Origin: Vitrella brassicaformis CCMP3155 | Lineage: Eukaryota > Protista > Chromerida | NCBI GenBank assembly: GCA_001179505.1 | Contig: CDMY01000218.1 | Coordinates: 100,985 to 164,984 of the forward strand | Direction of reading: 5' to 3' | Length of the DNA stretch: 64,000 bases | Shown: in pieces, positions 30,600 to 35,950 of the stretch | Position numbering within the stretch: position 1 is the stretch's first letter | Layout of the letters: each line of letters starts with the position of its first letter | Translations under genes and position numbers: made by a program | Notes under the pieces: model-generated | What the model saw: the letters and a program-made list of their open reading frames with translations, nothing else | What the model was told of the DNA's origin: nothing | The model's database searches: none

Positions 30600-33500
30600 A
30601 TGATGGCGCTGAGGGCCCTCTTCCGCCGTCATCCAATTTGGGCCCTGGCGGCTGTGTGGCTTGCCGCCAACTTGGTGCCCATGGCATTCTCGAAAGGGAA
30701 GGGGGGAAAGGGAGCGACCACAACCACAACCACAACCACAACCACAACCACAACCACGACCACTACGACGCCTGCGCCGACCGGAACCAACCACTACGGC
30801 ACGCCAGGTAAGCACCAGGCTGAGTAATGGATAGATGACACATATGTGCGCATATGTGCGCATTGTATGCAGCCGCCGGTGACTGGGTTCACCGGCCCCA
30901 CTCATGCTCTTATTACTACAGTACGCACACACGGCCCGACGGACAAACACAGGCATCTATAATGATTCTGTTCGTTGCATATGTTGTGGTCCAAATGTGT
31001 TGGTGTCCTTGTTCTCCGCACTCAGTCGACACGACGGTTACGGAGAACTACGTGAGCTCGCTTGCTCACTCAGAGAGGACACTGGACGCACTGCAGCCCC
31101 ATTGCACTCATGCGCTGTGGTGATGTCTTGTGAATTAAGGAGGACCTGAGGTACTCCTGCCAGCAGGCCAAACCGGAGTGGGACGGTTCGCTCGTGGTCA
31201 TCGACGATGGCTATGAGAGCCAGTGGCTGGCGGACCACCTGCGGGCCGAAGGCGACGAGGACAAAAGAATGTGGGTCCGATACACGCGGGTAAAAGATAT
31301 TGTGTGTCCACACAAACAAGATGTCTCTCATAAGCCTATCTGTTCACATGTCATGACATCGAATGCAGAAAGGTCCTGATCCCGGTGAGGTACCCAAAAA
31401 CATGCCTGATATCGGGGGCTCATCGGCGGAGCGGGGTGGGTGGGAGCCCAACGAAACAGCATTCTGGGGCTGGGACGCCCCGAGCACTGGCCTGTGGGAC
31501 GTCTCGTGGGACGTGTCTTATCCCTGGGACAATTTTGATGGCGACGGGGCCCTTGCTATCGTCAAGGGGCCTGAGTATGAGGTCCCGGTAAGTATGCAAA
31601 ACGATCTTCAAGAGACGGGCATGTGCACATATACTGGACTGGGTATGGGTGCTCCACATATGTCGATCAGTGGCACCTGGTACTACAGACTAAGGACAGG
31701 ACCCAAACCTACCGGGCAATGGTATATGGCAGCCAGACAGGCAGGGGCAGGCGAATTCGCCCTGTTCTCTCGATTGTTGAGCACTTCCCCTCTTTTCTTT
31801 CCGTCATGCTATGTATGTATCCTGTCAGTGTGAGAAGCACGAGCCCAGCTGCGGTGCGTGACCATGGCCAACCAACCACACTGGACCACAGCCAAAACAA
31901 AGAGATCATTTTGCAAGTCTCGTGTTTATTTGTGCAGTGGAGCCCCCATCGGTGCAAGTGCTGATGCCATCTGTCTTCCCCGAGGATGCTGAAGCCAACT
32001 ATTTCGAGGTCACCATCCGGTTTTCAGAGGACATTTCTGGTCTGGCCTTCAACAACTTCACCAACCTGACGAGCTGGCAGACACTCGGCGGCGTCAACGG
32101 AGTTATCGCATTTGTTTCACAGCCAACCAACAGAGAGATTGTCGAGTGGATATGGCCCATACAGAAGGGACGCGTGACGATTCAGGTGCCGGAGAATGTA
32201 TTCTCACGTAACTACGGAAATTTGGACCACAACAACCCGTCGAATATCCTAACAGTGTACCATGGTGCGCTAGACGAAGTAATGTGAGACATGAATCAAT
32301 CTGTGTTTGTGTCCTGTGCACGTCGTCAGGCTGCGGGATGCTGTGGGGGAAAGGTTTAAGTCATACCGCAATTGACAATACAGACGCTTACTCCTGGTGG
32401 CACTGTGGCCGCCTTTGTTATGAGACCCCTAGCTGCAGATCGTTCAGCTTCGACGCCCGGAATGGCCAGGTGGGTGGCGGACCGGTCCCAGCTCCCTGTC
32501 GCCTCTATGATCAAGCCGAGCTCAGTGGCTCAGTAAACCCCGCTCAGGTCAGCTCCGCGAGAGCCTGCGCCGTGAATGAGGGTAAGATAATTCCATCGAT
32601 CTCGTCCCATCCCATTGTCCCCTTCCGTGCTTGAAGATGTGGAGGCACCTGAGGTGATGATAGTGCGCGGCGTTGACGCGAACGGGGGCCCCTTACCCGG
32701 CGGGAGCATCCCCCACTTCTACAACAATCCGAACTACATCCACCTATTTGCTGGTATGTGACAAAGAATGGAACACAACAGGACAGAATCTGACCCCAGT
32801 CAGCATCCATCACATCAAATGCATCACCAGAGTTTCACTTCACCGAGCCAGTGAATCACGTTGACCCCTCTGATCTGGATATCCAGTGCACCAACTGCGC
32901 TTTCGACGGGGGCATTGGCTGGGTCAAGGTCGGGCCTGTGGACAAGGAGAACGTCACATGGCCATTGTGGAGCGATCAATGGCGAGTGGAGGTATGTAGG
33001 GAGGTAGGTCGGTCGGTCGGTCAGTGCGTTGGTGGGGAGGTGGACTCTCTCATGTCTCTGTCCTTCAGATCCATCTGGATGAATTGCCACCCGGGTTCAC
33101 CACCGGCAAGGTCGTGATTGGACTCGATCCTTCCCACGATGTGGCGGATTTTTCCGGCAACCTTGTCAGCAATACTCCTGCGACACTAGAATTTGTCATT
33201 CAACCCGCAGGTCACACTCATACACACACGCACGTCACCCACCCAGTATACAGAAAATCATCATTCATCCTGTTGTTTCTCGCTGCAGATACTACAACAA
33301 TAGGGCCCCCAACATCTCCCGTCAGCCCACCAGGTAAGCGTCAATCACAGCCACCAACCAGATATGCCTCCTTCTACTTGTGTCAAGATGAGCCTACCCC
33401 TACAAACGGGCCACCAGACCGCCGAATGGACCGCCAGATGGGGGCACAGGGGGGACGTCTCCGCCTCTCCAGCCAAACATACCATTTGACCAGGTAGAGA

Positions 33501-34485
33501 TTTCATCTGGCGGCTCGGATGATGGCGATCCAGCAGAAGGATGTGAGATTTCTGGCACACGAGGTATAAATGCAGACATGTGCCTTTCAACTGCCTTCTT
33601 GTGACTGATGCCTTTTTGCTTGCAGATGTCCGTTTGGCCTGTGCGGCATCACAGAGAAGAAAGTTCATCACTCTCGTGGAAGGCAGCTATATAGCTATTG
33701 TCGAGGGCTCGACACACGATGACACTCTGCGGGGCAACAGCCAATCCAACACCCTCATCGGTGGCGACGGCGCAGACATACTCGATGGCCGTGGCGGCAG
33801 CGATGAGCTGGTGGGGGGCGGCGGAGCCGATACCTCTATCATCGGTTTAGAAGAGGGAGACGTGACGATACAAGACTTCGATACTGGCACCGTTCACGAT
33901 CAGCTCAACCTCGCCAGCTTCCCCTCAATCACGAGCATGAGCGATCTTCGAGAGAGAATGACCAGCGGCAGCGTCATCATTGACATTGACAGAACCCACA
34001 GAGTGCGCATCCTCTATCGCACGCCGCAAGAAATGTTGAATCCCAAGTATTTCCTGCTTTGGACTCCTGAAGGAGACGATGCAAGCGATGAAGCAGGCGA
34101 CGACGAATGCGGCTGGTTTTCTTACGCGAAGCCCGAGTGTGTGGACACAATCCTTAGCATCGTCGGGGGTATTGTTTTTGTGGCTGGTCTTTTTCTGGGG
34201 GCATGGCAATTCCTCGTCAAATGCGTCTGGAAGAGCTCGGCTCCCGCAGAGACAGAAGAAGAGCAAGTCAAGGTCGAGGCGAGAAAGCGCTCGATCTCTG
34301 ACACACGCGACTCACGTGCCAGAAGCTCCCTCGCGACCAAGTCCGAGCGGAAGGTAGACAGAGATGTAACGGACATCGCCCGGGAGGAGCAGCATGATGT
34401 GGGCCCCTCTCACGTGACGCTGTATGAATCGAAACAAAAGGCCGATTCAAGTACACGAATTCATGTATCTAAGCACGTGTTTTGA
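30600..34485 (+). CDS. Type I membrane mosaic protein: signal peptide, poly-Thr, C-type lectin-like, Ig-like, PAN/Apple, Ig-like, RTX Ca-binding repeats, TM, cytoplasmic tail
   Basis: Signal-like IWALAAVWLAANLVPMAFS. CTLD-like W..SCSYYY..CQQAKPEWDGSLVVIDDGYESQWLADHL..MW..CEK. Ig-like FEVTIRFSEDISG..VTIQVPENVF..GN and FHFTEPVNHVDPSDL..VADFSGN. Six-Cys Apple domain at 32330-32580. Nonapeptides GGDGADILD GRGGSDELV GGGGADTSI. TM ILSIVGGIVFVAGLFLGAWQFLV. Most splice phases checked as consistent; one junction near 31740-31830 unresolved. Confidence 0.8.
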
Positions 34486-34616: not shown

Positions 34617-34936
34617 ATGCTGTGGACATTCCTTAGCTACTGGTGTTCCTCTTCGCTGGCACCGTTGTTTTCGCCATCCATCATTGGTACGTGTCCGGGA
34701 GGGAGGGAGGGAGGGAGGGAGGGAGACGGCTTGAATGGGACTCGTCTCTGTCGTACGTCTTTGTTTGTGTCTGTGTGTGTCAGGTATGAGTGCCGTGTTG
34801 GTGTTGGGCCACGCCATCTTCCACAAGGGCAAATGCGAGGAGGAAGACGAAGAAAGTACGGAACACTAGAACGCAATGCGTTCAGTCTTCCTCTCTGTGT
34901 TCGTTTCTGTGTGTGTGTCCTGCAGCTGGTATCTGA
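34617..34936 (+). CDS. Possible three-exon 50-aa micro-ORF with a hydrophobic segment
   Basis: GT-AG joins give MLWTFLSYWCSSSLAPLFSPSIIGMSAVLVLGHAIFHKGKCEEEDEETGI*. May instead be UTR introns. Confidence 0.3.
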
Positions 34937-35950
34937 GTCACCATGACTTGTGACGGGGGGTGCTTTCAATCCTACCGACCGACATGTGTGGCTGGCTAGC
35001 GTCTCTCTCGTGTGTACAAAAGGCGGCTGCCTTTTTCCCAGCGAGAGAGGAGAGCTGTGTGTCCTTGTACAGTCTAGCAGAGGGTATCCCCCGGAGAAGC
35101 CTCTCCCTTTTTCGGTGTAGTTTTGCTCCTAATGTATCGATCAATGCATTCACTAAGAGATTTCTTCTTGTCTCGTTGGCTGCCGCTGACGCACGGATGT
35201 GACACCTCCGCCTCGCCCTCCATGCCTTGGGGGCGTAGCGAGGGTGTCATGTCCATCGCCAGAGACAGTGACAGACAGGAGATGGAAGGAGAGTCGTGTT
35301 GGTACGTCGTGTGTACATCGGGTGGCATGGGTGAGTATGTCTTGATGACGACGTGAATGTCTGTCCTCCTTCCTTTCCAGCCAACGGGTAGTGCGTGCGA
35401 TGCCTGCCGTCGGCTGTCGCACACAATGCCACGGGCGTCGCAAGCATAAGGGGCAGCCACATGCATGAAGGTCATAAAGTGATCGCTTTCCCACGTCACG
35501 AGAGACCGAGACCTCGACGTGTACGTAATGTCATCGACAGCCCGTCATCCCGCGTGTGTTTTGCGTGTCAGAGGTGGGAGGGACATTTGTCACCCGCCGT
35601 GAACATTGTGTGCGCATTTGAATGGGAGAGTGCTCAAACACATCCAAGCGTGTTGGTGCCTGTGCGATCTTTGAGGCCCCGATCCGCGTCTCCGTCCACC
35701 CAGCTCGCGTCTCTCCCTTCGGTTCCAGTCGAGTTGCGTCAAGTGCCCCGAGCGTCCTCTGTCGCAGCCAATTGGTCGCAGCTTCTTTGAGTCGTTTCGC
35801 TTTCCCCTGAGCCCGCCGCTCCTGCCTGCCCCGGCGCGTCCCCTTGCAGCTGCAAGTCACTCTTCCCCCCTTCTCCTCTCGCCCCCTCGCTGCATCGAGG
35901 GGCCCGGCCGCTCTTGCCTCCAAGTCACTCTCTTCCCCCCTGCCTGGCTG

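Follow-up and report, generated by a model that had tools for sequence, protein, structure and literature searches.

A Vitrella brassicaformis gene joining adhesion-type exons to an RTX membrane-anchor cassette, with a reading-frame break in the linker

Within a 64,000-nt stretch of the chromerid Vitrella brassicaformis CCMP3155 assembly (contig CDMY01000218.1, positions 100,985 to 164,984 of the forward strand; hereafter the window), we analyzed a nuclear gene of 15 exons on the + strand (window positions 30600-34485). An earlier note, made from the sequence alone, had proposed that this gene encodes a surface receptor in which bacterial RTX repeats are combined with C-type lectin, Apple, and bacterial immunoglobulin (Ig)-like domains. 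Our sequence comparisons show a chimeric gene in which parts of two Vitrella families are joined inside an intron, and the only transcript we recovered has a frame break in the linker between its two halves. On balance, we favor the reading that this mRNA encodes a secreted protein devoid of the RTX module, the transmembrane (TM) helix, and the cytoplasmic tail; the four-module receptor is probably not the main product.

Exon boundaries were set exon by exon from GT-AG sites and reading phases and were then compared with those of paralogues. All searches used single exons or natural transcript contigs as queries, and phases were calculated for each exon. Labels such as C217, C269, and C511 denote contigs of the same genome, and labels such as L017 and L043 denote retrieved sequences. 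Eleven acceptors of the resulting gene model are CAG and three are AAG, most domain exons are phase 1-1, and GC is even across the window (0.48-0.62). The model includes two mini-exons, 1b and 4b, beyond those recognized in the earlier note; both are conserved in paralogues, and they were recognized because the same short exons are kept on C511, C323, C27, and C539.

The two halves of the gene have different relatives. Exon 13 has five paralogues at 55-60% identity (on C217, C1045, and C349, with two on C499), plus more distant RTX loci, and these RTX-side paralogues have only exons 12-13 in common with our gene. They belong to an RTX-anchor family of at least six genes, in which a linker, RTX repeats, a cap, a Cys pair, a TM helix, and a conserved tail follow one another in that order over the last two or three exons; exons 12-13 of our locus show the same order. 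Each of these paralogues is a longer gene that closes with the homologous exon, and the ectodomains encoded ahead of the cassette comprise SbsA/Big_5-like Ig units, a Cys-rich repeat, or FG-GAP repeats. In public databases, the models available for these paralogues (1266, 502, 617, and 669 aa) are listed as unnamed proteins. As to whether the proposed architecture was already in the databases, a point on which the earlier note had made its claim depend, RTX-plus-TM proteins of Vitrella are thus present, though unnamed and with other ectodomains. Irregularities occur in some of these copies or in their sequence records: the transcript of the C217 paralogue (L043, ~530-731) contains frame breaks inside the Ig-like region, the 502-aa public model of the same paralogue starts from an internal Met and lacks a signal peptide, and a C499 transcript contig (L018, ~1172-1271) has a run of N where its two called open reading frames (ORFs) meet.

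The 5' half belongs elsewhere. Exons 3-10 have paralogues on C511, C323, C27, C539, and C492, and a near copy of exons 1-10, at 81-85% nucleotide identity, is split between the ends of scaffolds C269 (L038, C269:1-1016) and C728 (L037, C728:25040-26487). Downstream of the exon 10-like exon, all five paralogues examined encode another PAN domain, followed by several Cys-rich repeats and a long conserved region, and none of the five has RTX repeats there. Along L039-L042, the second PAN is followed by three to five Cys-rich repeats of the CGDG...CDDGN...GDGC type, then by a Thr/Pro-rich stretch and the long conserved region; the encoded proteins resemble large receptor-type proteins. The near copy likewise goes on to a second PAN and Cys-rich repeats without RTX, and it has an in-frame TAG within its exon 4-like exon.

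The join between the two halves can be located closely. At the nucleotide level, the match to the near copy extends 19 nt past exon 10 into the following intron and breaks off at 33229. The first linker exon (exon 'a') of the paralogues on C217 and C1045 is the homologue of exon 11, and the breakpoint is thereby placed within the 60 nt of intron segment 33229-33288. Both parent introns at the join are phase 1, and the fusion was therefore in frame when formed. Elsewhere in the window, we found neither the Ig exons of the RTX parent nor the second PAN and Cys-rich repeats of the other parent. The graft came from a resident Vitrella gene family that already had the linker, RTX, TM, and tail, rather than by direct insertion of bacterial DNA; the RTX exon matches the rest of the gene in GC and GC content at third codon positions (GC3). 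The earlier idea of a bacterial stalk grafted by exon shuffling is thereby retained in part: the module is of bacterial type and recombination in phase-1 introns amounts to exon shuffling, but the donor is a Vitrella paralogous family. Just downstream of the gene, a non-coding segment of 920 nt (34636-35555) is 96% identical to C269:1691-2606, a stretch that precedes the near copy's exon 1 by ~700 nt; the genome has two copies only. This segment is closer to its copy than the gene halves are (81-85%), a hint that the surroundings of the chimera underwent a complex duplication or gene conversion.

The identity of the RTX module in exon 13 is clear from several profile comparisons. The Pfam HemolysinCabind profile (PF00353) matches at 43.7 bits against a cut-off of 23 (E 2.7e-11), covering residues 27-61 and a second stretch, and the five Gly/Asp nonapeptides read in the earlier note occupy residues 27-71. 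With NCBIfam, residues 14-118 align to the RTX parts of serralysins, EglC, and RTX hemolysins. A family profile built from six Vitrella copies was compared with solved structures; it matched the CyaA RTX region at 5e-22, protease C of the serralysin family at 2e-11 (profile positions 14-129), and both CyaA block V with its cap (5cvw, 6sus) and HlyA (9p0c) over positions 40-135. The cap-like segment proposed to follow the repeats is borne out by these alignments, which run to profile position 129-135. A bacterial repeat protein likewise aligned with the exon 13 family right through the cap. Since the profile alignment spans both repeats and cap, the whole bacterial module is present, and we identify it from these profiles as an RTX-plus-cap module of bacterial type residing within an intron-rich nuclear gene. 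An AlphaFold2 (AF2) model of exon 13 from six sequences had a mean predicted local distance difference test (pLDDT) of 33.8, too low for use, and the beta-roll fold is accordingly predicted from sequence profiles.

Beyond the module, exon 13 encodes one TM helix (mean hydropathy 2.29) and a charged tail, as the earlier note had it, and the whole RTX-to-tail part lies in one exon (860 nt, close to the ~0.9 kb claimed). Placed after the module, the helix and the 88-residue tail leave it no free C-terminus of the kind used in type I secretion. We also considered bacterial contamination and rejected it, because the exon is flanked by spliceosomal introns, is spliced in a transcript, and has the GC3 of the gene itself: 0.62, next to 0.63-0.67 in the other exons.

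The transcript evidence comes from one contig, L017 (1364 nt; Joint Genome Institute (JGI) sample 3300017297), the sole transcript found. It is 100% identical to the window, starts within exon 9 (from 32891), continues through exons 10, 11, 12, and 13, and ends 40 nt beyond the stop codon. As L017 joins exons 9-13, the RTX exon belongs to this transcription unit. This bears directly on the case that the earlier note had named as its own refutation, in which the RTX exon is a separate gene downstream of an adhesion-module gene. The gene caller applied to L017 did give a separate 269-aa ORF, which is the only protein we found that holds exon 13 (at JGI, with no NCBI record). That ORF, however, begins at a GTG picked by a prokaryote-style caller. 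The RTX frame itself is closed upstream by a TGA at 33389-33391; it has no signal peptide, and no ATG anywhere within the RTX and cap region or ahead of it. With the exon spliced onto exons 9-12, and with its homologue in every paralogue being the last exon of a longer gene, we consider a separate gene extremely improbable.

The same transcript reveals where the reading frame fails. In L017, the end of exon 11 (33333) is joined to 33388, after an AAG acceptor whose homologue in the paralogues on C217 and C1045 is a CAG. Reading from 33388 keeps the first of the linker's GPPD units (33408-33419) in the ancestral frame, whereas the second (33428-33439) and all downstream sequence are in a different one. 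The starts of the two units are 20 nt apart here versus 24 nt in the paralogue, and alignment with the C217 transcript places a one-base gap at ~33420-33423, between the units. Given this 1-nt deletion in the linker exon, translation stops ahead of the RTX part: the upstream ORF produced by L017 splicing is 626 aa long, closes with an out-of-frame tail of 26 residues at a TAG at 33495-33497, and has no TM helix. The RTX module is thus not read together with the upstream ectodomain and signal peptide in L017, which leaves production of the proposed receptor undemonstrated. The continuous ORF over all modules assumed in the earlier note is not supported by this result; the exon check by transcript that it had called for supports the joining of exons 9-13 and at the same time shows use of an acceptor from which the RTX exon is out of frame.

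Could the break be an error of sequencing or assembly, with the true gene in frame from the ancestral acceptor? Low-complexity, repeat-like sequence, of which this Pro/Gly linker is an example, can indeed contain single-base errors. The scaffold and the separately assembled L017 nevertheless agree at 1364/1364 bases, the site in question among them, although the strain and read set of the L017 sample are not established, and we regard an artefact as very improbable.

A weightier alternative is that the spliceosome uses the AG at 33391-33392, so that exon 12 starts at 33393 and the deletion is offset. Only this start would yield a 933-aa type I membrane protein, with the N-terminal domain, an Ig-like, a PAN, and a further Ig-like module carried on an RTX stalk with a TM anchor. 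The rescue would be exact (minus 1 nt plus minus 5 nt), and the frame running through RTX, TM, and tail is fully open and as well conserved as in the paralogues. Against this, the sole transcript uses 33388, the counterpart of the acceptor in the paralogues, and the rescuing site is a GAG acceptor, a kind seen at none of the 14 acceptors in the gene model. GAG is the least favored kind of 3' splice site. A start at 33393 would also place the first 12 codons of exon 12 out of the ancestral frame, across the conserved GPPD unit. In addition, no protein joining exon 13 to upstream exons was present among 1.84 billion representatives; the public gene model of the locus, which a word search reaching proteins of 0.55-1.75x query length did not retrieve, presumably lacks exon 13. 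We therefore treat splicing at 33393 as a possible but distinctly less probable account.

Our preferred reading of a frame-broken gene whose mRNA encodes a soluble product has to be set against several observations that weigh on the other side. Exons 12 and 13 together remain open for 343 codons and retain all family-invariant motifs, with private changes in only 7/86 otherwise-invariant columns (other members have 0-15). An open and conserved frame of this kind implies either a very young break or an in-frame isoform under selection, and the AG at 33391-33392 would restore that frame exactly. Moreover, the transcript evidence is a single assembled contig, and exons 1-8 are without transcript support at the locus: two scans of metagenome_contigs, with exon 4 protein patterns and with an exact exon 6 27-mer, returned no transcript for the 5' half. 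Weighing these points, we still consider the locus probably disabled, and any in-frame isoform would be minor at most.

The modules of the 5' half, which would make up the product of the observed mRNA, differ in how firmly they can be assigned. Exon 1 encodes 18 consecutive Thr and, near the N-terminus, a hydrophobic stretch at residues 16-30, in agreement with the signal peptide and Thr stretch of the earlier note. The Thr run (30716-30769) is a near-perfect ACC/ACA trinucleotide repeat, for which length variation among strains is likely. Exon 7 encodes a PAN/Apple domain with six Cys, as had been claimed; PAN_1 (PF00024) matches at 23.0 bits, above the Pfam cut-off of 21.4, and PAN_4 at 21.9 bits, under its cut-off of 27.

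The first Ig-like unit, encoded by exon 6, is upheld by some approaches and not by others. A Pfam search with E up to 1 was without match, whereas a language-model feature search of a protein atlas reached 0.94 to Big_12 clusters, with 184 shared features, and all of its top ten matches were Big_12 (PF19078) or Big_5 (PF13205), which belong to one clan. The AF2 model is a seven-strand all-beta fold of low confidence (mean pLDDT 64), for which the top Foldseek matches were the bacterial Ig-like domains of LdtMt2 and SbsC (E ~3e-3, TM-score ~0.5). The model and the atlas matches together lend moderate support to exon 6 encoding a bacterial-type Ig-like domain. The second Ig-like unit of the earlier note corresponds to exons 8-10, a putative beta-rich unit divided among three exons that are conserved in paralogues.

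The N-terminal domain (exons 1b to 5) is a Trp-rich region of ~175 aa that spans seven exons, and exons 2-5 are conserved exon by exon in at least five paralogues, which points to a real domain. The earlier note had read it as a C-type lectin-like domain (CTLD), and this assignment gained no profile support. Searched exon by exon, neither the gene nor the paralogue exons gave any Pfam match to Lectin_C (PF00059) or other CTLD profiles; a genome-wide Lectin_C scan in the same mode matched 12 other exons, none of them at the locus or its paralogues. Searches of PDB sequences with exons 3 and 4, singly or as paralogue profiles, returned chance-level matches only. Exon 4, put through the same kind of atlas search, matched unrelated clusters with scores no higher than 0.90, and the result was not used. 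Read by eye, the domain does resemble a long-form CTLD in the spacing of Trp, a Cys-Tyr-Tyr strand, a hydrophobic Asp-rich strand, and a terminal Cys-Glu-Lys, and it may be one; its EPN tripeptide is not conserved in the paralogues. The coordinates of all exons and features are collected in Table 1.

Table 1. Exons and features of the gene, in window coordinates.
Feature	Position	Strand	Description
Exon 1	30600-30807	+	Start codon, signal-peptide-like hydrophobic stretch, 18 Thr; GT donor and phase 1 inferred
Exon 1b (48 nt)	30873-30920	+	Predicted start of N-terminal domain; CAG/GT sites, phase kept
Exon 2	31026-31051	+	N-terminal Trp-rich domain
Exon 3	31140-31289	+	N-terminal Trp-rich domain
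Exon 4	31369-31587	+	N-terminal Trp-rich domain
Exon 4b	31671-31721	+	N-terminal Trp-rich domain; found through paralogues
Exon 5	31829-31853	+	Last part of N-terminal Trp-rich domain
Exon 6	31938-32264	+	Candidate Ig-like beta-sandwich, bacterial Big_12/Big_5 type; phase 1-1
Exon 7	32330-32581	+	PAN/Apple domain, six Cys; phase 1-1
Exon 8	32637-32753	+	Putative second beta-rich unit; conserved in paralogues
Exon 9	32831-32991	+	Putative second beta-rich unit; exon 9-exon 10 junction seen in L017
Exon 10	33069-33210	+	Putative second beta-rich unit; conserved in paralogues
Chimera breakpoint	33229-33288	+	Within intron between exons 10 and 11
Exon 11	33289-33333	+	Thr/Pro linker, RTX-family origin; spliced as predicted in L017
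Exon 12	33388 (observed) or 33393 (hypothetical) to 33563	+	Linker
Exon 13 (860 nt)	33626-34485	+	RTX to tail; present in L017
RTX nonapeptides	33706-33840	+	Five Gly/Asp units, exon 13 residues 27-71
Cap segment	33841-34062	+	Follows RTX repeats
Acidic stretch with Cys pair	34063-34140	+	After cap
TM helix	34150-34218	+	Exon 13 residues 175-197; mean hydropathy 2.29
Conserved basic/Ser-rich tail	34219-34482	+	88 residues, charged
Stop codon	34483-34485	+	End of exon 13

Taken in order, the events that we infer would be as follows. Recombination within introns would have joined exons 1-10, from a parent with a signal peptide, Thr run, Trp-rich, Ig-like, and PAN/Apple domains and a second beta unit, to exons 11-13 of the RTX-anchor family, whose members are predicted type I membrane proteins with a Pro/Gly linker, RTX and cap, a Cys pair, a TM helix, and a cytoplasmic tail. 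The frame would have been shifted afterwards, when the linker exon lost 1 nt. From the ancestral acceptor, the mRNA would then encode a 626-residue soluble protein, presumably secreted, made up of the Trp-rich domain, Ig-like domain, PAN domain, and second beta unit, with the RTX exon left as an untranslated 3' part. In intact members of the family, the signal peptide would lead into the secretory pathway, and Ca binding would fold the RTX and cap into a rigid juxtamembrane stalk of about two and a half beta-roll turns, which the neighboring Cys pair may pin. The conserved basic/Ser-rich tail could serve as a sorting or phosphorylation site, and the ectodomain modules carried on the stalk would differ from gene to gene.

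Beta-rolls of the RTX type are familiar from bacterial proteins exported by type I secretion. A spliced eukaryotic membrane-protein family with a whole RTX module beside the membrane was not described in the literature we searched, and a text search combining Vitrella with hemolysin returned nothing relevant. Our comparisons show that the module has moved between Vitrella genes via recombination in phase-compatible introns, in this case with a breakpoint that can be narrowed to 60 nt. At least two copies, at this locus and on C217, are frame-broken in the sequenced culture strain, which cautions against inferring working receptors from DNA alone; for annotation, the 933-aa model needs junction-level RNA evidence before it is entered. 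Should an in-frame isoform be made through the downstream acceptor, an outcome we consider possible but less probable, Vitrella would display the Trp-rich, Ig-like, and PAN/Apple modules on a Ca-folded RTX stalk. A bacterial type I secretion module would then have been domesticated as a juxtamembrane stalk and shuffled via phase-1 introns, with this locus as a recent swap.

The chromerid genome paper reports many sugar-binding and adhesion-type extracellular architectures and does not mention RTX or hemolysin-type repeats. The PAN/Apple surface and microneme-type proteins of apicomplexans and chromerids resemble our locus in having a six-Cys PAN domain within a modular secreted alveolate protein, although the characterized microneme proteins show no orthology with this gene. 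Bacterial RTX proteins such as CyaA, serralysins, and HlyA share with exon 13 the tandem Gly/Asp nonapeptides followed by a cap. In these proteins, a C-terminal secretion signal comes after the module and an ATP-binding cassette (ABC) system exports the unfolded protein, whereas the Vitrella product is encoded by a spliced nuclear gene with an N-terminal signal peptide, and a TM helix and cytoplasmic tail follow the module. Close counterparts are the Vitrella RTX-anchor paralogues (CEM18028.1, CEL94344.1, and the unnamed proteins of 617 and 669 aa), which are 55-60% identical over exons 12-13. Like our locus, they have the Pro/Gly linker, five-unit RTX, cap, Cys pair, TM, and basic/Ser-rich tail, with the RTX-to-tail part in one exon. 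They differ in their ectodomains, which are SbsA/Big_5-like Ig with a Cys-rich repeat, or FG-GAP, in place of the Trp-rich and PAN modules; at our locus, the module is out of frame in the mRNA found.

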